Counted from the stretch's first letter, positions 4,939-62,456 are shown. The stretch is 64,000 nt of DNA from Macrostomum lignano (GCA_002269645.1 NIVC01000106.1:62001-126000), one strand, 5' to 3'. Translations and numbers: made by a program. The notes: generated from the letters alone by a model not told the origin.

Positions 4939-7006
4939 CTGTGGAAAACGGGGACGCGGATGGGAGAAGAATTTTGTTATAGTTTCACATTCCAATAATT
5001 TCCCTGGGTTTGATTCCCAGCTTGCAATGGGGGTTTGTTGTCTGATTCACACCTGTTAGCACTAACCCCCCCAAGGCACAGGCTGTGTGCCCTGCCTGAA
5101 GATGATCGGTGTCAGGGCAGCCGTACACCCCGTGAGAGCATGTGAGAACTGTTTCTCACAGTCTGCCTATTAATTTGGATACTCAGGCGTCCATCTTCGA
5201 TGGGTTCCTTTTTTCCTCGTCGATAATCATACTCAAGATTTAAATTTTGAGACCACGGACTAGCTAGCCGATACGTGAAATAAAGTTGCTTGGGGTTCTG
5301 ATTCTCCCCGGGATGTGCTCTCTCTCTGGGGCATTTTACTTTGAGAAGGATCATTGAAATCAGCGTCGAGCCTCTTCAAACTACAGTTGACAAGATGGCC
5401 TAACTCCCCTGGGGAATGCCAAACAAAATTCCATTTCTATTACAGTCCAGCCGCGGATTAATTGAGAATCTGGCCCGCCCCACCCTACAAAAACAAGTGA
5501 GCAGTATAAGACAAAATGGAGAAGAGAGACGGGTTCGAGTGAAAGTCCGTCAGAGACTGCTCCGGCGCGCAGGAGGCGGAAAAGGTTTCCTTGAAGGGTG
5601 TCGCTTTTAGAAAGTTGACAAGTTAATCCGGGAATCACGCGACATCAGGCCTTATCTACTCTGCTCCTGGCTATCTCTGTCTATCCATCCTCTTCCACTC
5701 TTCTTCTCGTCTCTTTAAAAAGGACCGCCACCAGAGTTTCAGCCGCCCCCCTCCCGCCCGGGGCGTGTCGTCTTCTCCTGTCAGCTTTTCTCAATATATA
5801 CGCAAGGGCCAGGGTCAACAGCCATGCGCGTCGGGGATTTCGGATTTCCATGCAAAGCTCCCCTTTTTCCCTCTCGTGTATTCCGTGTATGTCGGCGGGA
5901 AAGAAAATTAGAGGGCTAGCAGAAGATCGTTCGATCAATTCGTTGGGATGCTACAGCAGGGTCGCGGTGCTCCCGGGCGGTGGATTTCTCGCAGCCTTGA
6001 GGCTTTTGACACGTCTCTCTAGTCTCTAAATCTTCTTCGGGGAAGTGACGTCTGCCGGGTGGATTTACAGCCCGCGTTTTCCTTTTAAATCCATCCCATC
6101 GACACCGAGGCTCTCTAAGAATTCAAAAAGGCGACAAAGACGTCACCAGCTGTATCGTGTGCCAAACAGAGATCAAGATGTCAACCTTGCAGGCTTTTCA
6201 TTTCAAGCGCTGTTGCCTCTTGTGTAAACATTAACAGGCCAAAATTGGTTGTCCTAGATAGTAGAATTTATTTTTTAAAAGACGTGCCAAAAACTTTGCG
6301 AGTGTAAAAAATGGATGGACCACCCGCTGTTCATGGAGGTCAGCCGGTGTTCACGGGAACGAAGATTTTCGACGCGCAGAATTCATAATTTCAGCTGTCA
6401 ATGATGATTGCACCGACGATTTTTAATAGTAGAAGAGAAGCATCTCCCAAGAGGGACTCCTTGCCGTCGGTTCTGTCCTAGCCTCTCATAGGAGGTTGGC
6501 ATTCAAATTAAAACGCTGCCGCAGTTTGAGTAACTTAATTTTCTCCGCTCCCGTTCAGGCAGTAATAGTCGGTGCGGGTCACTTAAGACAACTCGGCAAG
6601 CGAGAAAAAACTCCATTATAACCCCGCTTGGGCTTTCTAAATTCTACAACGGGCCAGCGCTCGTCAGAAATTCTGCCTCCAAAGATCGAAGCTATCAGCG
6701 GGCCGCTTTCTGAAGTCCCATGCAGCAGTCTCTTTGCGCATAATAATGATTTCAATGCGCATTAATATCGCAGAGGCTTTGATCTGTGACGAATTAGCCG
6801 TCTAAAACCTAATTACCGCATATTTTGCCAGCAGCGGAAGCTGTCGCTCTCCCCCAGGATCCGTTGGGAATATGTTTTTGAGGAAATTCTCCCCCCTCCC
6901 CATCCCGAAAGGAGAGTCGGAGTGAAGCTTAAACCGTGCATACGAGTAAATTCAACGAACATCATTTGACACAGTAGAGCGTACAAATACTTAATTATAT
7001 ACTTAC

Positions 7007-7161
7007 CGAAAGTTTGAAAACCACTTCACTAATTGTGCGGTGTTGTTCTTGTTGAACTTCACGTCCGGGAAGTAGGCCTTCAGCACGGCCGAGCTGGGAT
7101 AGCGATTGTAAAAGAACAGCAGCTTCGCTTTGCGCAGGTGGATCGGTGTCAGCGTGGTGGT
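7007..7161 (-). CDS. pros: prospero/PROX coding exon 3 of 5 (atypical homeodomain)
   Basis: [52 protein letters not shown] is the Prospero homeodomain. Acceptor CTTCAG, donor GTAAGT. Confidence 0.97.
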
Positions 7162-8924
7162 CTGAAGGCAAATTGACGTATGGAACAATTGTTTAAGAGA
7201 GTTTATCGAAATTGAGAGTCAACCTTTTCTTGGAGATTTGTTTTACTTTGATGCAAAGTAATCAAAAAGATTTGAATATTTAGCAACGGATACTTAGAAT
7301 ACAGAACTACAGTCAGTGGCTGTTTGGGGTCTCAGCGAGCGTTACGCAATGTTGCGTTACGAACCAGTCGCTTTATACAGCGTTATGTGCTGGTGCGAAT
7401 TTGCGCGCGCTTCGCAAGACTTAGTTGATGTGTATAGCTAAAGTTTTTAATAGTCAACACACAATTTGTTGAGCGAAACCATTCGTCAAACCATTGACGA
7501 ATGCCCCGAACGCAAAAATTTTGTATATAGCTATGCAATTTCAGTGCAAATTAACTAGAAAGCAGAAAAGCAAGCGCTGCATGGTTGAAAGCAAAAAAAA
7601 ACTGACATCACTGCTGCAGGCGTATTTCTGTCGTTTACAAAGCGGTTCAGGGCCGCATTCAACCGGATATAAACTTGAAATCCTCTCTTCTATGTTTTAC
7701 TGCGCAATCCTCAGATTGCAGGCGAAAAGAATTTCCAAAAGAGCCAATTTTGTCCTCCTCAAGCTGGCAAATTTTCACGTCTCCCCAGAAAGTTTTTTAA
7801 ACGCTTCGACGAATGACGATCGCTTCAGTGCAGTTCCGCCCCGGAAACTCGACAAGGGGCGGAGGGGCGGGGGCCAAGTTACGACCCGAAGTAAACCCAG
7901 CGCCAGATGTAGGAAGAATCGCATTAAAAGAGTTTCAGATTCTCCGATCATAGCAACTCATCATCGCTTGCTACCCAACCAGTTTTGATGACCAAGGAAT
8001 GAATAAACAGTGATAAACACCGGAGGACAAGAGTGGAAGGGGTTGGTAGGCTGCAATCGCTGCATTGAAACTTACAAGAATTATACTCGTACGTCTCTTC
8101 CGACATTCCAGAGCCGTTGTGCCTTCCTCAAATCCCTCTTACCGAAGGGCAATTTCTGCCGAAAAAAGAGCCTGCCAGACCTTAACCTACAACGATACCA
8201 AAATTTGTTTACGCACTGAGTGCTGCTTTCAACGCATCGGGTTGTGTGGCGCACAGACTACTGGCGGTATCATGTGACTTGATAGTTGCCTATGCCTGCC
8301 CCCCCCCAACCTCAGCTGCACCGTAACTTACTGGGTTAGCTTATAACTGACTTTAGTCAACGCGTTCAATCAGCAGCTAACTAAACTGATCACCTGGATG
8401 TGGGTGCGTGCGGTCTTGTATAATGCAGCCAGGCAACCAAATGCTTTAGCTATGATTGCTGGGTATATTATACACAAACATGCAAACAAAGACGGAGCCA
8501 CTGTCAAGTTGTGAGACAGCAAAAGACAAGCAAGGCAAGCAAAAAATACTGCCCCGCCAGAGACACGCAGAAAGATAGATGGCCGGCTAAGATTAAGTTC
8601 AAAGAGGCTGCTGCGAATGAGGAAGCAATCACTTCTTCCCTGATATTCGGCTACAACAGAGCAGGCCTGAGGAACTATTTATGCAAAGGTGTTTTTGTCA
8701 CACTGTGCCGAACGAAAGGTGTCCGCGAACTATAAACAAACGAAAGTTTATTCTAGTTGTAGCTGTGGAAATTTTCTGGTCACTTTTTTAGACTTTGTCC
8801 AGGATTGGTGAAGACGCACGAGCTTCGATTGCGAGAGTGCGAGATCTCACGAAGTGGTAGGCCAAGCGAATAAATTATAAATGTTGAAATGGCGCTCTTA
8901 GAAACCGAAACAGCCACTTCCTTA

Positions 8925-29403: not shown

Positions 29404-29607
29404 TCAACTATCATAAATAATATCGTAATGGCCAGGCCGGTACAGCAGGGTGAGCACAGGAACAGACTGGCCGTCATCCGGGAACGTGTGCCGACTGATG
29501 CCGGCGCCATCGCGGTGCATGTACTCAACCGCGATGCAGGTCTCCAGGGTTTGAGTCAGAGCGATTATGTGAATATGATCGGATTCGTGACGCATTGGCT
29601 CCACTTC
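29404..29607 (-). CDS. OTUB1: Otubain OTU deubiquitinase, exon 2 of 2
   Basis: EVEPMRHESDHIHIIALT...LLYRPGHYDIIY contains the catalytic His motif. Acceptor CCGCAG, stop TGA at 29404-29406. Confidence 0.95.
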   Translation of the reverse strand, partial: EVEPMRHESDHIHIIALTQTLETCIAVEYMHRDGAGISRHTFPDDGQSVPVLTLLYRPGHYDIIYDS

Positions 29608-29754
29608 CTGCGGGGATTCGAGTTCGAGATGGCAGGGTCAGAGGTGGTTAGCTGCGCTTTGAAGGCGGGCAATAAAATTAGGCGACTGACAAGACCACAA
29701 AATCATTCATTAGAACCGACATTCTTAAGCATCCATTCCTAAAGATTCCCACAA

Positions 29755-30540
29755 AATCGACATTCCTAAAGACCCACCAAAGCCGACATTCTCAAAGACA
29801 AATCAAAACCGACATTATCAAGGATCCATCAAAACCGATATTCCAAAAATCCCTATCAAAACCGACATTGTCAAAAATCCCCATCAAAACCGACATTCTC
29901 AAAGACCCAACAATACCGACATTCTCAGGGATCCTACAAAACCGACATTCTCGAGGATCCATCATAACCCGACATTCTCAAGGTTCCATCAAAAACCGAC
30001 ATTCTCAAGGATCCATCAGAACCGACATTCTCAAAATCCCTATCAAAACCGACAATGTCAAAAATCCCTATTAAAACCGACATTCCCAAAATCCCCATCA
30101 AAACCGACATTGTCGAAAATCCCCATCAAAACCGACATTCTCAAAGACCCAACAATACCGACATTCTCAAGGATCCACCAAAATCGACATTCTCGAGGAT
30201 CCATCAAAACCCGACATTCTCGAGGATCCATCAAAACCGACATTCCCAAAAATCCCTATCAAAACCGACATTGTCAAAATCCCCATCAAAACCGACATTC
30301 TTAAAGACCCAACAATACCGACATTCTCAAGGATCCACCAAAACCGACATTCTCAAGGATCCATCAAAACCGACATTCTCAAAGATCCATCAAAACCGAC
30401 ATTCTCAAGGATCCATCAAAACCGACATTCTCAAGGATCCATCAAAACCGACATTCTCAAGGATCCTTCAAAACCGACATTCTCAAGGATCCATCAAAAC
30501 CGACATTCTCAAGGATCCTTCAAAACCGACATTCTCGACG
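29755..30540. repeat. Minisatellite, ~26-bp unit AAAACCGACATTCTCAAGGATCCATC, filling the OTUB1 intron
   Basis: Tandem variant units occupying ~80% of the 957-bp intron. Confidence 0.92.
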
Positions 30541-30564
30541 ATCCTCCACCACTAAACCACTAAC

Positions 30565-31176
30565 CGTAGCACAGAAGTCTTTAATAGTTTGCTCTCCGTC
30601 CAGAAAGCTCTGAAAGAAGTCGGCATGTGTCTGCAAATGACCGCTGACTAGTAAGCGCAAGAACACAACAACATAATCGCTTTGACCGGGATTGTTAAAC
30701 ACGGACTCCAAATTGGCAGTAGAGCATTCTCGCCTCTCAACAGTCTCAACTAGTTCGGAGAAAGCGTCGTAAAAATCGTCAACCGTAACGGATGAATAGC
30801 CCAACTCTATAATGGCGTCTTTTCTTTGTCGACAGATTTCTTTAAGTTTGGCAGCAGCTTCTGGCGGCTGTTGAAGCAGCTGGTCCAGATAAGCGAATCC
30901 GAAGCCTCGATAAAAACAGTTGCCATCGCCTCGGGTTCGTCTCAGACGAGGATACCGAGCGCATAGTTGCTCGCATTTGGCTAAGAATACGGGGTCGTCT
31001 GTGTACTCTTGCTTCAGGTTGCTAGTTGGTATAGCTGGCGTGATGAGGGCCTGAGCCATGGCTATCTCATTTTCAATGTCCTGCTGCTGTTTCTGATAGG
31101 CCTCGTACAAACTGCCTGGATCTGCTGAGGAATTCTCCTCCGATTGGGGAGGCTTCTGTTCTGCCTGTTCGGACAT
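30565..31176 (-). CDS. OTUB1: Otubain OTU deubiquitinase, exon 1 of 2
   Basis: YEAYQKQQQDIENEIA N-terminal helix, RRTRGDGNCFYRGF (catalytic D/C) and DYVVVFLRLLVSGHLQ. Donor GTTAGT at 30564. The spliced product is 271 aa, the typical otubain length. Confidence 0.96.
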
Positions 31177-32429
31177 TACCGCTGAATATAGCTACTGTCA
31201 GTAACAAGTTGAGTAAACAATCTTTAATTATGCTCATGCAATATAAAAGTAATTTATTTTGTTTAATAGTTAGTTTGTAATCTCGATTGCACAAAAAGCA
31301 GTAAATTGTTGTTGCCAAACCACTTGAGACGAGGAGAGAGTAAGAGAGAAGAGATCTCAGAAGGCATAAACCTTAATAAAGCTTGGATTGCAATTGTAAA
31401 GTTTCAAAGGACCCAAAGGTTAGATAGACAGGCTTTGTAGGCTGTCTGTGGCCTGTGGGTTGAAGTTTACTGACCCCCTGACTTAGAGTGCAGTGTTAGA
31501 CAAGTTTATTAGTAACTAAATTGATTACAATTGTGACTATGATTATTTGAATTCGTGACCTTATTCATCATTGAATAAAGATTTCCTAGAGTTTGTTTAA
31601 AAGGTTGTGAATGAGGGTTTGCTTTTTCATTTCTTCCACTTTAAATTTGATCTACCACTTCTATCATAGCAAATACAGATAAATAAAGCATGTACAATGA
31701 TAGAACTACTATCATAGCAAAATTGCTGCTTTAAAAGTTTTGTAACTTTTGCATTAAGTCTGGGGATATAACTTTCCCAATTTTTATTACCTTAGAAAAA
31801 ATTTTCTAGCTAGATAAAGCATAAACAATGATAGATTTTTTTTGAAAAATTTAAGTTTTTCCTTTCATTAAATTTCTACCTTGGACTATACTGAATTAGG
31901 CTCTTAAGCCTAACAACTTTTTGACCCCTATTTGAGTTGCTAAAATCTTGTCTTTCTTATCTTAAATCTAAAATATTAAGAAATTAGAGAATTTAAACCA
32001 TTAAATTTGAGCTCCTATTGCAGCTAAGGTCTGAACTGCACTGGATGCCCTCCTTTGTCATGCTAAATCATGTCAGTGCTAGACCCCAATTGCACTGCCA
32101 AGGGCCAATCTGTGCTAGACATTGTAAACAATATGAACCATTGGCTGCAATAGAGACATAAGTTTATTTATTTTTTGAGATTTTAAACAGCTAAAAATCA
32201 CTTCAAAGATTTATTATTTGATTGTTTAAAAGCTAGCACAATCTAAGTGGAAACAAATCCAGGCCATTTGCATGTAGAATATAAGACATAATATAAAATA
32301 GCTTTTATATATAAGAAATCTAATTAATAGTAAGATATTTTTTTAAATAATTAATTACTTATTAATTGTTTTTTACTTGATTATATCCTGTTTTAAAGCT
32401 CCTAATAATGGGATAAATAGTCCCACTTC

Positions 32430-32745
32430 AATGAGACCATGCTGCTAAGCTGCCATTATAATAGCAAGCTATGCAGTCATAAGAACTTTTTGCTTGTCTA
32501 GACCAGCTGGTTCTAAAAATGCTGAACTTTCTATCTAGACCTAGGGCAGTTACCCAGCAGTCTTAGGACAGCAGAACCAAGTTGAACATGGTGTACTTCA
32601 CTGATAGCTATGTTAAACGGCATGGAAGCCTTTTTAATATAGCAATTACAAAATTGTATAGTTGGCCTATTGGCTATATCTTTTGCATATTCTCAATCTT
32701 ATGTAGCAAAGCCATTAAACAGCTACTATAGAACAATTAGCTTTA
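32430..32745 (+). pseudogene. Partial second copy of a DEG/ENaC extracellular-domain segment (paralogous to ~33307-33620)
   Basis: Aligns by eye to 33307-33620 (GACCATGCTGCTAAGCTGCCA...AATATAGCAATTACAAAATT) and encodes ETMLLSCHYNSKLCSHKNF followed by stops. Confidence 0.75.
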
Positions 32746-32822
32746 GTCTACTATATATTTTTTAAGTAAATCTTAAGTAGATTTTATAAATTCTACAGCA
32801 TTCTATTAAACAGGATACAAAA

Positions 32823-34450
32823 ATGCAAGCCCAGCTCTATACAATGACTAGTGCCACAAAGGAGCTGGCTGGTTTCACAAGAACCCATGGGTTGTTGCAT
32901 ATCTTCCTGTCCAGATGCACAGCTTAATGGCTTTTTTGGCTGGTTTTATTTGTAACTGCCTTGATTGGCTGCACTATCCACTTGACCAAGTTGTTGCAGA
33001 AGTTCACCAAGCACTCTATTGAGTTGCAGCTGAAGTTGAAAAGCAAATGAGCCCAGTCTAGATTATAATAGGTTGCAGGTTATAATCTGCAACTTCAAGC
33101 CTGCTTCTATATATTTGACTCTATATGATGATTATCATGATTACTTGAAAACTATTGAGGAAACTTTGACAACTGGTTCAAATAGGACACCAAAAAGTGC
33201 CTGCAAGAATTGGATAAAAGCTACTAACCCAAATCAACTTAAGAAGATATGCAAGCTCCTAGATGTGATATAGGTGTTGGATGACACCATAGATATCTCC
33301 CACCTCAATAAGACCATGCTGCTAAGCTGCCACTATAATAGCAAGCTGTGCAGTCACAAGAACTTGTTGCTTGTCTAAACTAGCCAGTTCTAGAACTGCT
33401 ACATATTCACCTGGACCCAGGACAATTGTCCAATGGTCCTAGGGACAAGACAGCCAAGAGCTAGACATGGTGCTTTTTACTAATGGCTACTTTGAATGGC
33501 ACAGAAGCCTTCCTAATATAGCAATTACAAAATTATATAGTGGGCCCATTAGCTAAATCTCTTACATATTTTTATGTAACAAAGCAATCAACTAGGCAGC
33601 TGCTATATAACCTAGGTTTATTTTTGTGCAATAGGAATGCTATATATATTGACTTTCCAAACTGCATCCTTAAATTGGACCTTGGATGCCATGCAGTTTT
33701 ATATCTTAGTAGGCCTATTAGCAAGGAACCCAGTGCAAAAAAATTAGCCTCAGTCTATTGGATGGCGCATTTTCTTTCACAAGTCAAAAAGCTACCTAAT
33801 GAATCAGACTAGGTTTGTAGACATGGTCTCAGGCATATTTATAAAGACTTTAGGACAAGATAACTGTATTGATTCTGGCTAAAAAAAGCTTGCACCTAGC
33901 TAGTACAAATCAACTAGTACCTATGGCTATTCCATTTGCCACTGACAAGGAGGAAGGTTATGAAACTGCATCCTTAAATTGGACCTTGGATGCAATTTTA
34001 TATCTTAGTATTAGCAAAGAACCCAATGCAAAAAATTAGCCTCAGTCTATTGGATGGCACATTTTCTTTCACAAGTCAAAAAGCTACGTCCTAATGAATC
34101 AGACTAGGTTTATAGACATGGTCTCAGGCATATTTCAATGACTTTAGGACAAAATAACTATATTGATTCTGGCTACAAATAAGCTTGCACCTAGCTAGTA
34201 CAAATCAACTAGTACCTATGGCTATTCCATTTGCCACAGACAAGGAGGAAGGTTATGAAACTGAACTGATTCTTCAGTTCCAAATATCAACAAAGAATCA
34301 AGAGACAAAGATCTAGGTACCATTGCTATAGAACAAGGTCTAAACCAAGAGCATATGGCTATGTTGGCCTATCATAGCACCTATACATGCTATGCACTTG
34401 ATCACTTTTTACTTTGATTGACTATAGACAATTCTTGACCCTATTGGAAT
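32823..34450 (+). pseudogene. DEG/ENaC (amiloride-sensitive sodium channel family) pseudogene, apparently intronless over this span
   Basis: Collinear family motifs: pre-TM1 HG motif (GFTRTHGLLHIF), hydrophobic TM1 (WLFWLVLFVTALIGCTIHL), post-TM1 VIICNFKP (cf. FPxVTxCNxNP), TMLLSCHYNSKLCSHK..V*TSQF*NCYIF (cf. MLxxCxFxGxxCxxxDF..T..GNCYTFN), LDMVLFT, and a late WP...FYFD segment. Multiple stops, frameshifts and a ~300-bp tandem duplication. TM2 was not confidently located and the 3' limit is approximate. Confidence 0.8.
33659..34257 (+). repeat. Direct tandem duplication of ~300 bp (33659-33962 / 33963-34257) inside the ENaC pseudogene
   Basis: Both copies start AAACTGCATCCTTAAATTGGACC and end CAAGGAGGAAGGTTATG. 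Confidence 0.92.
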
Positions 34451-35879
34451 AAATTCTTAGTGTTTAGCATGACACAAACACACTTAGTATACTATTTGTA
34501 TACTGCAATCTAGGGGGCAAATGGGTAAATAGCAAGAGTAACTATAAATAAGTTACTTTATCAGCTAATAAATAGTTTAATCTTACATAATTTGTCTAAT
34601 TTTTATTAAACAAATGATAGTATTGACTATGACCAACTTGCCTAAGACCTCTTATAAGTTAAGAGTCTTATAAGTTTTTTAATTTAGCTAGGCCTAATAA
34701 GCAGCTTATTATTTTCACTTAGGCCTAGTAGAATTTTATAAAAATATTAAACTTTGCATATCTTCTCACCTTGGCCTGCAGACTAACTATTATTAAAATG
34801 TTTTTTGAACTAAAATTGCTATGAAAAATTGGTAGCTTTTCAAGACTATGAAGATGATAAAAGCCTTCTGCAATTTGGTGTAGGGCCTAGCTAGAAGGAT
34901 AACATAAGTTATATTTGTTACAGGTCCTCCAATATGCTATTACTTTTATGTGCCACTTTTCCAACATATGCTACTTTTTGGAGTGCTGCCCCTTAGCCCA
35001 TCTGGTATATCATCTTTTAACCCTTTTGGTATACCATTCTACATTAGAAAGGTGCACTTTTTGAAGTATAGAAGAATCATTAGATAGGCCTAGCCACTTA
35101 TAAAATGCCAATTTTTCCAAAAAGGATCCTTGAGATAACCAAAAACTATTTGACTTAATTAGGTACTTAATATAATACTCTGGCATAGGCCCTAGTCATT
35201 TCCAATAGTTTAAACAGTTTTTTCTATGATTGTTATTATTGTGTATGCATGAATATTGGCCCTATGCTATTTGTTCCATAAAAAGACATTATATATTATA
35301 CTTATACATTAGACTTAGAGCTCAACCTAGAGCTTTAATGTATTATTGTTTTTCTGTATTTGTTATATATTATGTGACTTAAGCTCTGTTTAACTTTTAT
35401 TCTATTATTGTTTAGTAAGTCTATGACATTATATTCTTTCTTTTGCAAAGTTTCTCTTTTAGTTTTATTCTACCTTTCCCTTAAGACTCTACCTATAATA
35501 CAGCTACATACTCAGGATTCCTATTGTAACCATCAAATACAAATGATAACCTTGTATTGCTTATCACTATAGTAGTCATATCAAAAAGCTAAGGCCTATT
35601 AAAAGCAACTTGGTTAGCCATGTTGTCTAAAATGATTTAAAGATGCTTTTTCTAAATAGAATTTGACAAATATTTGATAGGGCCTATTGTAATAAGAATC
35701 TATAATTTGATTGAATATATATAGATGCTATCTTCAAAGCGTTAAGGTATAAAAAGTAGGTCTAGGTCTAGTAAGCTAGCTAAGCCTAAGCCACAGCTAT
35801 TGCATGGCACATCTACAGACTGCACTGCTGCACACAGCTGTTTCTGTTTAGTCCAGAACTGGAGGCGGGGGGTCGACAC

Positions 35880-36055
35880 ACACCCATAATTACCCCAGCT
35901 AATGCTGGTAGCTACCCATTTGATAGCTGTGTCGGTGTCGTCGGTAAACTGAAGCAATGCAGCTCAGACAGAGTTGCGCCCTAGGCCCTAACGCCTAAGT
36001 GTCTTGCTCAAGGACACAAATTGTTCCAGTGGGATCGGGAATTGAACCCCACTTT
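35880..36055 (+). mobile_element. Probable SINE body/3' tail fragment
   Basis: TACCCATTT..AGCTG...AAGTGTCTTGCTCAAGGACACAA...GGGAATTGAACCC resembles the conserved 3' segment of widespread animal tRNA-derived SINEs. Recognised from memory; no tRNA head identified. Confidence 0.5.
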
Positions 36056-36818
36056 GAATCATAAAGGCATCATCATTTCATTCTCAAATAGAGGCTTATT
36101 ATTAATAAATGAACCCTGCAAAGCTCATCTGTCATCAGTCATCACTCATCAGCAAACAAGACGAGCCATTGACTAAGTCATTATGAAGTGCCCGCAGTTG
36201 GGTGGATAGTTAGATGATGATCTTGGATTTCTAACAGCAAATTTTATAGATACTAAGATAGTCATCAATAGTCAATAGGCATGCCAAACCCCCACGATGT
36301 GAATCTATCCAACTCAGGACTAGGCACTTAGCACAATTAGCCCGTTAGCCGCCGCGCTGTAAACGTCGTCGGTTGAAAAACCGTTTAAATATGGTTCGCA
36401 AAAATGACAAAATCGCAAGCGAAACTTCTTCAAACACCTCAAAAAGCAATTCTTACTTAATTTATTTAATTAAAGAGTAAGTAAGTACTTTTAGCTTATA
36501 TTGCATAATAAAATTGAAGTAATTTTTTGAAGTAGTTTATTAGACTAGTGCACCTTTTGGCGCAAATTTGAACTGAAATTTTGATTAAAGGTATCTATTT
36601 ATATGGAATCTGGATGGATTGATCGTCACAACATCCTTAGACAGCTGATTTTTTTTTGTTTTTTAACAACTATTTCGCAAATTCATTACAAAACCCTACC
36701 CGAGGCTATATAGTCGAGGCGATTAATTTTGAGTTGACAGCTGACAGCATGTACACTGTACACATATACACGTCACACAGCTAGCTGCTGCAGCTGCAGC
36801 AATACTAGCCCACCTACT

Positions 36819-40782
<3,964 letters not shown>

Positions 40783-44628: not shown

Positions 44629-44948
44629 CTGCAATGTACAGATTTAATAGATTTTTGTTTAAAAGAAAACGAAGTTAGCTAATTTAAACATGCACATTTA
44701 AAGTGTTTTAAAAACATTTACTTTCGATACATATCGGCAAGAAATTATGACGGACACTAAAACTATTTTCGATACATATCGGCGTGAAGTTATATCGATA
44801 TGTAATATCGATGCATTGATTATTTTCTATACATATCGGCAAGACATTATTTCAGACGCTATTATCTATTTTCGATACATATCGGAGATATAAATTTCGA
44901 GTAAAAAAACTTATAAGAAACATATCGGCCCCCGAAAAAACACCTTAC

Positions 44949-45521
44949 CTTTCGAATGCAGTTTTAGCATCCGGGCGGCACAGCCAAACAGCGTCGGGAC
45001 CAACGGCCACATTGAGTCTGGACTCCAAATGATCCTTAGCCTCGTGATAGTGACTGCCGTACATTGACAAGCCAGCTGATGCTGTCTGTAACAGCCTGTA
45101 CTCTGCCGCCGTTGGTGACAACTCCAACAATTTATTGTGATACTCCACGGCAGATTTGCACAATTCCAAGAATTCCTCCCTGAAACTGTCAGTCCCGCAG
45201 CTGCCGCCGCTGCTGACGCTGCTGTCATTGTCGTTGTAGCAGCTGTCTTCATCGTTGAAGTCAAGCAGACGACTCAAGATTTGTCGGCATAATCTGTTGC
45301 TGCTGCTCAAGGATCCGCTGCCAAAATCTGCTTGGACAATTAAAGCGGCCAGTCGGGCTGCCAGAGGCTCCTGCTGACTGTCGTCCTCTGAGTCGAATGA
45401 TGACGAAGCGTCGCTGCCCGAATCTGGACTCCGAGATCCTTGACCTTGTTGAAGGTCCTTGTCCAGCAGCCAGTGATGTCTGTCCAGTAGTCGACTCCGG
45501 ACGTCCAGGTAAACTTGATGC
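44949..45521 (-). CDS. MYLIP: MYLIP/IDOL exon 2 of 5 (FERM F2 lobe and start of F3)
   Basis: HQVYLDVR...ARLAALIVQADFG...AEYRLLQTAS..LSMYG..YHEAKD. Acceptor ACACAG, donor GTAAGG. Confidence 0.9.
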
Positions 45522-45601
45522 CTGTGTCAGCGGGGCAGACGTTGTTGAATAAATTTAATAAGAGTCAGGACTCAGAGCTCTTCGGTGGGCGACGCACCAT
45601 A

Positions 45602-45832
45602 GGGGCGCCCTTTTTTTGTGGGGGCGCCGTTTTTTGTGGGGGCGCCATTTCAACTGTGGGGGCGCCATTTCAATTGTGAAGCGCCATTTCAATTGTGGGG
45701 GCGTCATTTCAACTGTGGGGGCGCCATTTCATTTTTGGGGACGTCGTTTCAATTGTGGGGGCGCCATTTCATCTGTGGGGGTGCCATTTTAATTTTGGGG
45801 GCGCCATTTCAACTGTGGGGCGCCATTTCAAT
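45602..45832. repeat. Minisatellite, 20-bp unit GGGGGCGCCATTTCAA(C/T)TGT (MYLIP intron 1)
   Basis: Read directly. Confidence 0.85.
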
Positions 45833-45901
45833 TGCACTATCCCCGGCCTGGCTACTGATTTAAAAACCGAATTGTATGGTTAAGTATGCTTTGTTTCTTA
45901 C

Positions 45902-46272
45902 CTGGTCTCCTGGTGGAGCATCATGTGAGGCGGCACATAGAATTTGACTCTTAGATAAAGCCGATAGACGCCGTTAAGCGCCAGGGTCGTTGGCAATTGC
46001 TGGTACAAACGGTTGCGCATATTAACCCACAGCTCCTCGCGTTTGGCGCCGAAGTAGGTTAAGCCGAAATAATCGACTTCGTGGAATACGCCCAAACACT
46101 GACAGACTTTGTCCAAGCAGTCTTGGCCGTTGGCTCGGTAATCTAGGCACACCTGGCATTGAGTTCCGTCTAGTAGAATTACGTCAATGCGAATAGTTCG
46201 CTGACGACCTCGATTGCAGCTTGGCGATGATGAGAGCGATTCATCGTCTGCTAGGACTCCCGTTGAGGCCAT
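45902..46272 (-). CDS. MYLIP: MYLIP/IDOL exon 1 of 5 (FERM F1 lobe)
   Basis: VILLDG...ANGQDCLDKVCQCLGV..EVDYFGL...LWVNMRNRL...LYLRVKFYVPPH. First ATG at 46272 with an in-frame stop further upstream; donor GTAAGA. Confidence 0.9.
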
Positions 46273-48132
46273 TGTCGATGCTTGAACTTGCGACACTTGC
46301 CTCCTTGCTTGCTTCAGAACTTGGAATGAGGAATTCCTCCCGAGTGTTTCGTTGCTTTATATGTTTCACTGTAGTACAGTTTAGTCAGTTCTCAGCCGCG
46401 TGGTCTCTTGGCCTCTTGAAGGGAGAGAGGGGCCTGCTTTGAATATTTGTGACCCTTCCTGTCTATTTTGGGCGTTAACTTCATGCACACGCTTGTAAGT
46501 GCACATTGAAGTGTACATTACCCAAAGCTTTTCCTTGCTTCTCGCGCTCGGGCAAGGGGTTTTCCCAAGGTCATTTAGGCACGCGTGTGTCTCGTGTGGT
46601 GGCGTAAAGAGCGTCAAAATCACTCAATCAGCGAGTGACGGCATGATTGCATGCTCCCCCACTGTTTGAATCATTAGGATTCCTATGTAGCGGAACCAAA
46701 GTAATTTTCTCACCTGTTATCCACCACGTGCTTGTTTTTTTGAAATCGCACCAAGCAAACTCACTGATTCTATTCCGATGGTAAATTTCCATTCGTAAAT
46801 AGGAAATCGTGGAGCGAGCGAACTAGAAAAAAGACTAGAAAGTGTAGCGAAGCCGCCAAGCAAAGGGCGAAAAGAAAAGTATATAATTCGTAAAAATAAC
46901 CTTATTACTTTCGGGAAAATACTGAGGTTAATTTTGTGTACTGTTTGGCAAATAATTAAGTTCCTACAGTTGCAACTCGCTAACTTGAGCATTTTCTGAC
47001 TTTTTTGTAAGACTCGTGAGTAAGAGCACTTTTTTCTTAAAATAGCAATTACGAAGCTAGCAAGCAATTCCAGTGCAAATTTAGCTCGTATAATACAGGA
47101 AACTTTGGCTTCACTTTTATTTTAGTCGAAATTCGAAAACATCAACAAAATAGAAATTCTACGAATTTGAAATGTTTGTGCCTTGAAATACTGTACTGTA
47201 TTGTATGTACACCGACGGGAATCTAGATTAAGATTAATTTCTGCTACCAAAATAGACAACTGGTCTTAATAACACTACTAACAGTAGCAATCAAATGATT
47301 TTTTCAAGCGCTTTACAGTCACTTTTCCGATTAAATTGCTTTGCCTTGGAGAGAATAACCGAGAGGAAAGTGTTCTTACAAGCAATCTATAAACCCTGGC
47401 AGGTTTTTCTCAGCCAAATACAAAAATTGGCTTTTCCTGCTGAATGCAAATATTGAGCAAGCGAAAAAATATCGCTGCAACTTGTATAAGCGAGAGGGAG
47501 GGTAAATATTGAGCAAACACCCCCAGTTTGCGGGGTGGCAAAAAGTCATCAAAAATTTCTTTGGCCAATTTCAACCAAAAGATGAAAAAAAAAGAAATTC
47601 TGATCGCGGAAGGAAGAAACTGCAGAAAGCTGGAGAAATCGAAATGTGCCACTTCCACAGCTGCAGCAATATAATCATCGCTTGTTCAAATTCTAACAAA
47701 GTTAATCGTCATTTCTGCCTGAGAATTATGCATGCATTTTGAGCGGAGGCAGAGAGAAATGAGAAAAATTAGAGTCAAACACTGGCTCAGCAACAATGAT
47801 TCAAGGCTTTGTTAGCTGTTCCGTTTATTGGCAAACAGACAGACAGCCAAATACTGCAGTCACCGTGTATTCAGTGACTGTACATGCATTTCTGAATGTT
47901 GTATTTATACAAAATGCAAGAATTTTAATCCCACTAAACAGGGTCGATCTGCCGCACCTTGAGCTGCAGCACCTTTAACAATTGTTGCTTCAGGTAAATA
48001 CTGAGCTCACACGGTGAGGCCAAGACCCATAGCACACATAGTCCGCGTAACATAATCAAGCGCCCTTGAATGTCCTCATAATTCCAAGTCACAGAGCAAA
48101 ATATTTCCAGCACCAGGGGCGCCAGCACCTGA

Positions 48133-49410
48133 AGCAATCAAGAAGCAATCAAGAAGCAATCTAGAAGCAATCTAGAAGCAATCTAGAAGCAGTCTGGAAG
48201 CAATCTAGAAGCAGTCTGGAAGCAATCTAGATGCAATCTTGAAGCAATCTAAAAGCAGTCTGGAAGCAATCTAGAAGCAATCTAGAAGCAATCTAGAAGC
48301 AATCTAGAAGCAGTCTGGAAGCAATCTAGATGCAATCTTGAAGCAATCTAAAAGCAGTCTGGAAGCAATCTAGAAGCAATCTAGAAGCAATCTAAAAGCA
48401 GTCTGGAAGCAATCTAGATGCAATCTTGAAGCAATCTAAAAGCAGTCTGGAAGCAATCTAGAAGCAATCTTAAAACAATCTAGAAGCAATCTAGAAGCAA
48501 TCCAGAAGCAATCTTGAAGCAATCTAAAAGCAGTCTAGAAGCAATCTTGAAGCAATCTAGAAGCAATCTAAAAGCAATCTTGAAGCAATCTAGAAGCAAT
48601 CTAGAAGCAATCTAGAAGCAATCTTGAAGCAATCTAGAAGCAATCTAAAAGCAGTCTGGAAGCAATCTTGAAGCAATCTAGAAGCAATCTTGAAGCAATC
48701 TAGAAGCAATCTAAAAGCAGTCTAGAAGCAATCTTGAAGCAATCTAGAAGCAATCTTGAAGCAATCTAGAAGCAATCTTGAAACAATCTTGAAACAATCT
48801 AGAAGCAATCTTGAAGCAATCTTGAAGCAATCTAAAAGCAGTCTAGAAACAATCTAGAAGCAATCTAGAAGCAATCTAGAAGCAATCTTGAAGCAATCTA
48901 GAAGCAATCTTGAAGCAATCTTGAAGCAATCTAGAAACAATCTTGAAACAATCTTGAAGCAATCTAGAAGCAATCTAGAAGCAGTCTAGAAGCAATCTAA
49001 AAGCAGTCTAGAAGCAATCTTGAAACTATCTAGAAGCAATCTTGAAGCAATCTAGAAGCAATCTAGAAGCAATCTAGAAGCAATCTAGAAGCAATCTTGA
49101 AGCAATCTTGAAGCAATCTAAAAGCAGTCTAGAAACAATCTAGAAGCAATCTAGAAGCAATCTAGAAGCAATCTAGAAGCAATCTAGAAGCAATCTTGAA
49201 GCAATCTTGAAGCAATCTAGAAACAATCTTGAAACAATCTAGAAGCAATCTAGAAGCAATCTTGAAGCAATCTAGAAGCAATCTAAAAGCAGTCTAGAAG
49301 CAATCTTGAAACTATCTAGAAGCAATCTTGAAGCAATCTAGAAGCAATCTAGAAGCAATCTAGAAGCAATCTAGAAGCAATCTTGAAGCAATCTAGAAGC
49401 AGTGTAGAAG
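48133..49410. repeat. Minisatellite, 11-bp unit GAAGCAATCT(A/T)
   Basis: More than 100 tandem copies read directly. Confidence 0.95.
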
Positions 49411-49984
49411 AAATCCAGACTTTTTATGGAACCTTCAGAAAACAATAATTTTTCAGAAAATGAGATGAGAAAGAAAGCAAAAGAAAAGACAAAAACGCCT
49501 TGAAAGCAAACAAACCGAGTGACTTGAAGCGACACTTTGGCCAACAATCTCTCGACAAATTTTCCAAGTCAGTTGAACACTTTGCAGGCACCGCTGAGTC
49601 AACCTCATATTCCAATATCAATATCAAATAAGTCAAAACTCTGGTCGGCCTGCTCATGCGGGCGAACTAACAATTCTGTCCGAAGCGACATAAGGATTAA
49701 ACATTTCTTTTGAATTCTATTGACTTATAAATTGACTAACTCCGCCGAAAAGTTTACACAATACACTTGTTCATAATCTTTGCGGCAACAGATGCCATGA
49801 GACTTATTTGCCAGCAAGTTATGAGGATTTTCCCATGAATTGAGTCTCCTATGGAAGGGTAGCTTTAAAAGGCCGGATTAGGTGAGAGATTTTGAGAGAC
49901 AGCTTTTTTTGGTCAGGTCCCTGTGAGATCGACGAAAACTCAGTTACGTTCCAGTTCAAGTGCGTGAGATTTCCATTGTGTATT

Positions 49985-61340: not shown

Positions 61341-61461
61341 TTTGACAATCGAAGTGTCTGAAGCGCCTGAGGATGAGGAGCATATGAAAAAGTCAGGCCC
61401 ATAAAATTGTTCAAAAGAAACTCAACACCACAAAAATCCGTCACACCGCCTTCATGCGCAG

Positions 61462-62456
61462 GGATCTACCAGTTCATCATGGACCACTTCCCCTACTACC
61501 ACGAGAACAAGCAGGGCTGGCAGAACTCCATCCGGCACAACCTGTCACTCAACGAATGCTTCGTCAAAGTCCAGCGCGACAAAGGCCGCCCGGGCAAGGG
61601 CAACTTCTGGACGCTGGCCGAGAACTGCGAGGAGATGTTCGAGAACGGCAACTACAGACGGCGGAAGAGGCGCCAGAAACCGGCCGAGTCTGCGGGATCG
61701 ACAGCCGATGCTGAAGCTGCCGGTCAACAGTTTGATGAAGATGGGACTGGATCCTCAGCTGCCGAGATGCAGAAGCGGCCGCGACTGTTTGCAGCCGCCA
61801 CCGCAAGCATGTCAGCGGCGACAACCGCTCGAAGCAGCTTCCGTATTGACGATCTGATGTCTTCTGGGAGTCCCAGAGCCTCGGCTGATCCCTACCAGCA
61901 CCCCTACCAGCACCCCTACCAGCATCAGTGCCGGCCTTCTCGAGACGACTTCCCCGCATGCACACCGGATGCCGGCAGCAGCAGCCGCTCAGCGAAGCAG
62001 AAAGTCTTCGACAACATCCCCAACCCGCCAACCCGGCCGGGAACAATGCCTGCTTCTTCTGCAACAACTTCGGCTGCTGCTTCTGCTTCTGGTGTCCTGT
62101 TTGCTGCTGGCGGAGCTTCAATGCCGCTGCCGCCTCCGCCGCCTCCGCCGCCGCCGCCTCCGCCACCACCGTCGCTGCCTCTGGACTTCAGCGGTCTGTA
62201 CAGTCAGTATGCCGCTCTGGCGCTCCTGGCCAATCAGCTGAGAGCAACTTCGACTTTGCCTCCGCTGCCGGGGCTGCCGCCGCTGCCTCCGCTGGCGTCG
62301 CAGCTTCAACAGCAGCTGCATCAGATACAGCAGCAGCAGCAGCAGCAGCTACAGTACACAGAAGCCATCACCGTGACAACAGCAACTGCCATTGATGCAA
62401 CCAATTCAACAACTTCATCGCCATCGGAGTCGCCTAATTCAACCAAGACGAGATGA
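61462..62456 (+). CDS. FOXL1: Forkhead box L1-like transcription factor, exon 2 of 2
   Basis: [51 protein letters not shown]...[13 protein letters not shown] closely matches the FoxL1 forkhead ([29 protein letters not shown]). Acceptor GCGCAG. Subfamily assigned by motif recall, not by phylogeny. Confidence 0.88.

Follow-up and report, generated by a model that had tools for sequence, protein, structure and literature searches.

A CpG-erased DEG/ENaC gene fragment upstream of OTUB1 in Macrostomum lignano bears the traces of an ended episode of cytosine mutation

Introduction

How can a few kilobases of an animal genome lose nearly all their CpG dinucleotides while the DNA on either side keeps its own? 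This question is raised by a locus of the flatworm Macrostomum lignano, within a stretch of 64,000 nt (NIVC01000106.1:62001-126000, hereafter the window; record coordinates are window coordinates + 62000). There, a 4.5-kb domain upstream of the OTUB1 gene is almost devoid of CpG and rich in CTAG. A preliminary description of the window presented this domain as a duplicated DEG/ENaC gene, possibly silenced by a process comparable to the repeat-induced point mutation (RIP) or the methylation induced premeiotically (MIP) of fungi. We analysed the composition of the domain, its origin, its substitution spectrum relative to paralogs and the order of events that produced it. Comparisons with the M. 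lignano genome covered about 128 kb in total; one locus, L004, derived from NIVC01000106.1, is 100% identical to window positions 19404-41176.

Composition and edges of the domain

The domain was delimited by its CpG observed/expected ratio (o/e), GC content and CTAG counts:

31332..35865 (NIVC01000106.1:93332-97865), no strand assigned: CpG-erased domain, 4534 bp

Five CpGs remain in it (31554, 32618, 33766, 34087 and 35740), exactly those listed in the preliminary description, against about 130 expected from composition alone and about 90 from the o/e of the flanks. The CpG o/e is 0.038, compared to 0.68 in the left flank and 0.74 in the right flank, and the GC content is 33.9%. The CTAG enrichment reported previously (about 38 vs about 14 expected) was also reproduced, with 38 observed vs 14.2 expected. 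CTAG is depleted in the rest of the window (82 vs 224 expected), and is about 4-fold denser in the domain than in the other AT-rich DNA of the window. Among tetranucleotides, TCGA and CCGG are absent and ACGT and GCGC occur once each; AGCT (45), TGCA (41) and GGCC (16) are in excess, and the GpC o/e reaches 1.66.

The right edge is sharp and lies at 35865/35866, where the CpG at 35740 is followed by those at 35866, 35874 and onward. The left edge, at about 31330, is less exact: the last CpG of the flank is at 31330, and the preceding 150 bp are AT-rich with only two CpGs. The abrupt boundaries initially proposed are thus accurate on the right and approximate on the left.

In a 500-bp profile, no other non-satellite CpG-free stretch was found in the 64-kb window. 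As initially noted, CpGs are retained by the long interspersed nuclear element (LINE), by the genes and by AT-rich intergenic DNA; the other repeats retain them too. In particular, CpG is normal in the intergenic DNA at 41-44.5 kb, although this DNA equals the domain in GC, is similar in TpA and has raised GpC.

One candidate for a second erased region, at 48131-49419, is CpG-free and CTAG-rich but was rejected since it is an 11-bp satellite, (GAAGCAATCTA)n. It comprises about 117 copies, in which about 60 CTAG arise purely at the unit junction, and it is unrelated to the domain. Minisatellites are extraordinarily dense in the window (dozens of arrays with units of 11-34 bp, 0.5-2.7 kb each), and several of them explain the remaining low-CpG bins of the profile. 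Within the right-hand part of the domain (34660-35800), a GGCCTA/TAGGCC motif is repeated (GGCCTA 9 vs 0.4 expected; TAGGCCTA 4 vs about 0). This recurrence may represent what is left of a short repeat that has decayed.

Identity of the erased DNA

Four features could be recognized in the domain, all on the plus strand:

32823..33541, plus strand: DEG/ENaC (Pfam ASC) pseudogene, N-terminal part, identified by Pfam ASC and by tblastn with the M. lignano proteins P0001-P0003
32421..32734, plus strand: displaced second copy of pseudogene segment 33298-33611 (76% identity), located 5′ of the pseudogene start
33659..34263, plus strand: 295-bp tandem repeat in two copies, 91% identical, each holding the next ENaC segment
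31326..31443, plus strand: segment homologous to positions 8541-8656 of paralog locus L001 (blastn, 71% identity, E 2e-12)

The pseudogene carries a start codon, the FxxxTxHG motif, the first transmembrane segment and the beginning of the extracellular domain, and is broken by in-frame stops and two frameshifts. Its match to PF00858 (24.7 bits for a cut-off of 23.6, E 1.5e-5) spans profile positions 5-187 of 455; the N-terminal 40-60% of the ASC domain is all that remains. The ENaC pieces in the 295-bp units (33721-33831 and 34034-34126) match residues ~252-288 of P0001.

The only homologs found were three truncated M. lignano ASC proteins (P0001-P0003), with 45-56% amino-acid identity. At the DNA level, the pseudogene is 72-73% identical to the paralog loci L001 and L002, and 90% identical in a purine/pyrimidine alphabet. 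Both paralog loci are CpG-normal (o/e about 0.9, GC 52%), which answers the objection, raised in the preliminary description, that DEG/ENaC paralogs might be equally CpG-poor. L001 and L002 lie at unrelated loci and have only about 1.4 kb in common, followed by minisatellite. The erased fragment thus belongs to a small, dispersed family of gene fragments and did not arise as the tandem copy of a functional gene. When C>T changes are set aside, it differs from the paralogs at only 25 of 582 sites (4.3%), and this copy therefore arose within this lineage.

The paralogs are themselves truncated open reading frames (ORFs) of 302 aa (L001 10001-10909) and 143 aa (L002 10001-10432), the latter frameshifted. 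A related CCAAACCAGTCTCAC-type minisatellite follows each of them (L001 11040-16000 and L002 11031-11185), so that the ENaC N-terminal fragment and its minisatellite together resemble a dispersed repeat unit. Stretches of low CpG in both paralog loci were considered as possible erased DNA, but turned out to be minisatellites rather than erased complex DNA.

Homology to L001 extends to the left edge of the domain, with which the segment 31326-31443 coincides. Its transition-tolerant local score was 113, compared to a maximum of 49 for shuffled sequences. This 118-bp match lies 1.46 kb upstream of the L001 ORF, and the corresponding spacing in the window is 1.50 kb. Between the two, a marginal local match was obtained (L001 9740-9958 with window 32161-32372). 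Global transition-tolerant alignment of the upstream region with L001 was not significant (302 vs 295 +/- 26), and BLAST in a collapsed purine/pyrimidine alphabet across the remaining domain gave noise beyond the ENaC parts. The remainder of the domain showed no recognisable homology, and Rfam and tRNA searches gave no RNA family. No terminal inverted repeats, long terminal repeats (LTRs) or target-site duplications were observed in the domain. The initial view of the erased DNA as a DEG/ENaC copy with its surrounding DNA, and not a recognisable transposon, is consistent with the Pfam ASC match, the paralogs and this absence of terminal repeats.

Substitution spectrum relative to the paralogs

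To polarise substitutions, the pseudogene was aligned with L001 and L002, and a substitution was scored wherever both paralogs have the same base and the window has another. Of the 120 lineage-specific substitutions obtained, 49 were C>T and 46 were G>A; 21 were transversions, and T>C and A>G accounted for 2 each. The spectrum is dominated by C>T or G>A, as anticipated in the preliminary description (95/120, evenly split between the strands), and 27.5% of the G:C pairs were altered on the pseudogene branch. All 35 CpGs common to both paralogs were lost in the window, giving TG (16), CA (12), TA (6) or GC (1).

The frequency of C>T depended on both neighbouring bases. With respect to the 3′ neighbour, it was highest before G (0.57), followed by A (0.23), T (0.20) and C (0.13). 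This order and the symmetric TG/CA outcome agree with the expectation for deamination of 5-methylcytosine (5mC). With respect to the 5′ neighbour, the rates were 0.37 after T, 0.31 after C, 0.29 after A and 0.17 after G, and TCG was the most mutated trinucleotide (14/18). That cytosines after G were spared explains why GCN trinucleotides, AGCT and TGCA are in excess throughout the domain. In the aligned part, the ancestors of CTAG were CTGG, CCAG and CCGG. A CHG preference (CAG/CTG) as the source of CTAG was not significant in this spectrum (0.21 vs 0.16, P = 0.35).

We also examined the succession of the two strands along the pseudogene. For all events together, the number of strand runs (51) was close to that expected (48.4), showing that the strands are interspersed. 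For non-CpG events alone, 19 runs were observed vs 25.9 expected (P = 0.035), a marginal same-strand excess.

Comparison with ordinary mutation

Could such a spectrum result from the ordinary neutral decay of an old pseudogene under normal AT-biased mutation? Two internal baselines were used: variants among minisatellite units, and the comparison of three homeologous copies of the locus, polarised on the lineages of the other two copies (L003 and L005). Among minisatellite units, per-site values were 0.028 for non-CpG C>T, 0.019 for T>C (ratio 1.77) and 0.018 for transversions. On the L003 and L005 lineages, after the whole-genome duplication (WGD), they were 0.0238 per GC site for GC>AT, 0.0129 per AT site for AT>GC (ratio 1.85) and 0.0096 for transversions; the C>T bias of the two baselines is thus in agreement.

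Transversions on the pseudogene branch amount to 0.036 per site. Non-CpG C>T was observed at 0.20, about 2-fold above the ~0.09 predicted by the ordinary regime, and T>C at 0.017, about 3-fold below the predicted ~0.05. The per-site non-CpG C>T:T>C ratio is thus about 12:1 on this branch vs about 1.85:1 ordinarily, in line with the initial proposal that non-CpG cytosines had also been hit. The effect on CpG is far stronger: the ordinary regime predicts the survival of about 28 of the 35 CpGs, and none survived. For so complete a loss, the rate per cytosine at CpG must have exceeded the in-domain non-CpG rate about 9-fold or more, and the ordinary rate about 17-fold or more. The main anomaly is therefore CpG-specific, with a moderate C>T shift at other cytosines. 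Classical hypermutability of 5mC is about 15-fold; the excess needed at CpG is of this order, and ordinary 5mC deamination during the existence of the copy could quantitatively produce the loss.

Some features of the domain do resemble neutral decay. Its GC (34%) is close to the equilibrium of about 35% predicted from the ordinary spectrum, and a TpA o/e near 1 and a GpC o/e above 1.2 are likewise found in the AT-rich intergenic DNA at 41-44.5 kb. Nevertheless, the ordinary AT-rich DNA of the window has a CpG o/e of 0.8-1.4, as unmethylated sequence at equilibrium keeps its CpGs. The fate of the 35 CpGs and the baseline comparison exclude plain neutral decay in the main; the C>T:T>C ratio and the local density of CTAG also argue against it, and we consider this explanation very improbable.

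Order and timing of the erasure

The internal duplication provided a first indication of the order of events. Of their non-CpG C>T changes, 10 are common to the displaced duplicate and its source, and 8 and 15 are private; the two copies destroyed the same ancestral CpGs in different ways. CpGs were thus still present at the time of the rearrangement, and the erasure followed the internal duplication.

The M. lignano assembly holds three subgenome copies (PMC10733133). For the OTUB1 locus, these correspond to the window, L003 (NIVC01000424.1) and L005 (NIVC01000423.1). In this long-read assembly, the erased domain and both its boundaries are present in all three homeologs, with the same neighbours. 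Divergence amounts to 2.6% between L003 and L005 and to 3.5% between these two and the window (three-way range 2.6-3.6%). In the domain (3.4%, transition/transversion ratio 1.9) it is similar to that of a flank (3.9%, ratio 1.7). About 4-5 CpGs were present at the duplication node, and 2 losses and about 5 gains occurred later. Since the erased state is common to the three homeologs and the spectrum after the WGD is ordinary, the erasure ended before the WGD and the domain has mutated normally since. No such process is at work in the domain any longer: the episode is over.

Among the CpGs at 31554, 32618, 34291 and 35740 and their homeolog equivalents, one is found in all three copies, 2-3 in two copies, and about 5 are private; the CpG at 32618 was gained in the window lineage by T>C. 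A cluster of C>T differences at 32532-32582 was dropped since it has no polarity, the window being the outgroup of the three homeologs.

The homeologs also bear on an artefactual or foreign origin (mis-assembly, contamination or a fungal insert mutated by RIP), to which the sharp difference in composition between the domain and its neighbours could point. Three independent homeologous contigs carry the domain, so that the earlier concern about a mis-assembled or foreign block falls away. Moreover, the ENaC piece is within a few percent of the M. lignano paralogs once C>T is set aside, and DEG/ENaC is an animal family. We give this origin hardly any credence.

A proposed methylation and deamination origin of the domain

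That methylated DNA loses its CpGs is familiar from animals, so that no novel system is needed. M. lignano still has both DNMT1 and DNMT3, and its level of 5mC is low (PMC11292947, PMC9246332, PMC10658182). We favour, with a probability of about one half, a self-limiting episode of dense germline cytosine methylation by these retained enzymes, followed by deamination. Composition, polarised spectrum, order of events and the end of the episode follow from the sequences themselves, and the presence of DNMT1 and DNMT3 is taken from the literature; methylation itself, its targeting and the enzymes involved are what we infer.

Under this explanation, the domain would be a dead, rearranged copy of a truncated DEG/ENaC fragment, together with DNA that travelled along. 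The segment would long have been among the few densely methylated segments of the germline, at the OTUB1 locus or before its arrival there. Methylated CpGs and, to a lesser extent, non-CpG cytosines would have deaminated to thymine on both strands, converting every CpG to TpG, CpA or TpA. CCGG, CCAG and CTGG would have collapsed to CTAG, and the relative sparing of cytosines preceded by G would have raised GpC, AGCT and TGCA. The process would be self-limiting: with the CpGs exhausted, maintenance methylation would be left without substrate and would stop, which explains the end of the episode. Since the WGD, the segment would have undergone ordinary neutral evolution at the equilibrium GC of the genome.

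Several observations weigh against this explanation. The LINE, the repeats, the genes and the AT-rich DNA keep their CpGs, and this single segment would therefore have to be targeted, a choice for which the explanation offers no reason. Excess mutation extends beyond CpG (C>T:T>C 12 vs 1.85): non-CpG C>T is raised about 2-fold and T>C lowered about 3-fold, for which pure CpG methylation is inadequate. The non-CpG excess fits only by assuming some methylation at CpH (H being A, C or T) or deamination-prone chromatin, and the pseudogene spectrum shows no CHG preference. Finally, the marginal strand-coordinated runs of non-CpG events (P = 0.035) would suit a processive deaminase better.

Methylation-driven CpG decay, as in the mosaic domains of invertebrates or the methylated pseudogenes and repeats of vertebrates, nonetheless shares with the domain the conversion of CpG to TpG/CpA on both strands and a rate excess at CpG of the classical order. 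Typical invertebrate methylated domains have a CpG o/e of about 0.4-0.5; at 0.04, the loss is far more complete here. The target also differs, being a dead intergenic gene fragment and not a transcribed gene body, and in our case adjacent transposable elements and genes were spared, non-CpG C>T was raised and the episode is finished. In both, loss is limited to a domain with edges, in a species that has DNMT1/DNMT3 (PMC11292947, PMC9246332).

Comparison with RIP, MIP and cytosine deaminases

We weighed the methylation explanation against an active, enzyme-driven burst of hypermutation. This could be RIP-like, with a DNMT-like enzyme or a deaminase aimed at duplicated germline DNA, or could consist of hyperediting by an AID/APOBEC-like enzyme, acting on both strands of a duplicated or extrachromosomal segment either before it integrated or afterwards. 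We regard such a burst as possible, if tentatively so.

The magnitude of the change (27.5% of G:C pairs) is like that produced by one or few passages of RIP in Neurospora. As in RIP of Neurospora and other Ascomycota, transitions are G:C>A:T nearly exclusively (95/120, with 4 reverse transitions) and about a quarter of the G:C pairs changed; stop codons destroyed the gene copy, and the process was self-limiting. Both internal duplicates were hit independently, and their present identity of 76% is near that at which RIP ceases in Neurospora. An ended episode fits a burst as well, as do the sharp edges, the left one coinciding with the start of homology to L001.

The target of mutation is different. 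RIP of the Neurospora type is recognised by a (CpA+TpG)/(ApC+GpT) below about 1.03 and a TpA/ApT above about 0.89. The domain has a raised TpA/ApT (1.11), as the RIP reading of the preliminary description would have it, but its (CpA+TpG)/(ApC+GpT) is 1.40, compared to 1.37 for the whole window, with no depletion of CpA. Accordingly, the per-site preference is for CpG (0.57), far above CpA (0.23) and CpT (0.20), unlike in Neurospora. In addition, L001 and L002 are duplicated too, yet they were not mutated, and most of the 4.5 kb is without a detectable second copy in the sequences compared. The association with duplication put forward initially is conjectural, and the RIP/MIP-like reading finds support in part: the C>T/G>A spectrum and the non-CpG shift speak for it, and the CpA index and the unmutated paralogs against it. 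The host is an animal, and RIP is held to be specific to fungi (PMC9246332, PMC2621366). Our literature search found no paper on RIP-like mutation in Metazoa.

MIP of Ascobolus provides another parallel, in which a specific duplicated and silenced segment is densely methylated, with edges at the segment ends. MIP itself causes no mutation; here the mutational outcome alone is seen.

RIP-like hypermutation in some basidiomycetes has a TCG motif. The non-CpG C>T excess, with 5′ T, C or A favoured over G, would suit a burst, and the high mutation of TCG resembles this basidiomycete hypermutation (PMC3318451). The clustering of C>T in one segment, the sparing of cytosines after G and the weak hint of strand-coordinated non-CpG runs are also reminiscent of AID/APOBEC hyperediting, as seen in retroelement editing, kataegis and foreign-DNA editing. 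The specificity of APOBEC enzymes is 5′-sided. In the pseudogene, however, no 5′-neighbour specificity of their kind (TC, CC or WRC) was found: the 3′ G has the strongest effect, a preference that is not an APOBEC trait, and a 5′ G spares cytosines 2-fold only. When all events are pooled, they are strand-symmetric and interspersed, without strand coordination. No report tying APOBEC-like genes to Macrostomum was found in the literature search, and passive decay of 5mC suffices for the CpG loss. Taken together, the domain resembles the products of fungal RIP/MIP in its outcome, and CpG decay of methylated animal DNA in its likely chemistry.

Neighbours of the domain

The following features flank the domain:

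29404..31176, minus strand: OTUB1 gene, two exons, start codon at 31176; CpG-normal left flank
35866..36817, no strand assigned: right flank, consisting of a tRNA-like/SINE-like piece (short interspersed nuclear element-like; ~35866-36053) and unclassified DNA; CpG-normal
36817..40742, minus strand: LINE (endonuclease-reverse transcriptase-RNase H), CpG-normal, present in the window and L003, absent from L005

The domain lies upstream of OTUB1, with the start codon 155 bp from its edge. Spliced OTUB1 encodes a protein with 100% identity to BOX15_Mlig001358g4, and the intron contains a 26-bp minisatellite (29752-30544). On the other side, the DNA at 35866..36817 adjoins the domain in all three homeologs. 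Its SINE-like piece had no further copy in the sequences compared, and matched no tRNA and no Rfam family. Since the LINE is absent from L005, it does not make the domain boundary.

These flanks are relevant to the proposal that the segment was mutated elsewhere, in a compartment that is heavily methylated or mutagenic for another reason (pericentromeric heterochromatin, for example), and was then brought, already erased, to its position next to OTUB1 by transposition or segmental duplication. The sharp edges, with CpG-normal neighbours 0.1-0.2 kb away, would be accounted for in this way, and the ENaC fragment family is indeed dispersed, with at least 3 further members at unrelated loci. Neither transposon termini nor target-site duplications were found at the domain, and all three homeologs are filled, so that there is no empty site. 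Such a move would alter the place of mutation and not its cause. We consider it unlikely.

The LINE copy in L003 (1901-4381) occupies the same junction as that of the window and is 99.6% identical to it, though the surroundings differ by about 3.5%; this points to recent gene conversion, to a patchy divergence of the subgenomes or to chimerism of the assembly. L003 also contains two copies, 100% identical, of a 1.9-kb piece of the erased domain (1-1902 and 5480-7381), one on either side of the LINE fragment. The arrangement resembles the product of a tandem duplication spanning window 34096-39297; it would be of very recent date or else due to misassembly. As its two partners are identical, the duplicate was dropped as a source of information. 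Two further CpG-normal genes are located nearby: a FERM-domain plus RING (zf-C3HC4_3) gene (44948-46356, minus strand), annotated as such in the homeolog L005, and a forkhead-domain gene (61377-62453, plus strand).

Implications for DNA methylation in flatworms

The DNA methylation pattern of free-living flatworms is essentially undescribed (PMC9246332). M. lignano has kept DNMT1 and DNMT3, yet shows little 5mC and little genome-wide CpG loss. An erased island of 4.5 kb beside spared genes, LINE and intergenic DNA implies a highly selective, dense modification of cytosines in silenced segments.

A more far-reaching interpretation, which we regard as rather improbable, is that M. lignano or its pre-duplication ancestor had a germline defence triggered by homology or duplication, which would methylate and/or deaminate cytosines across a duplicated segment and act until the copies diverge. 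It would be a metazoan counterpart of RIP/MIP, acting on CpG first, and the present locus would be one of its fossils. Should similar islands coincide with duplicated sequences genome-wide, a genome defence of the RIP/MIP type would have been seen in an animal for the first time. If they are unrelated to duplication, the domain would be an extreme but ordinary fossil of local methylation. NIVC01000106.1:93332-97865, present in three subgenome copies, provides a concrete and datable locus for the targets of flatworm DNMTs.

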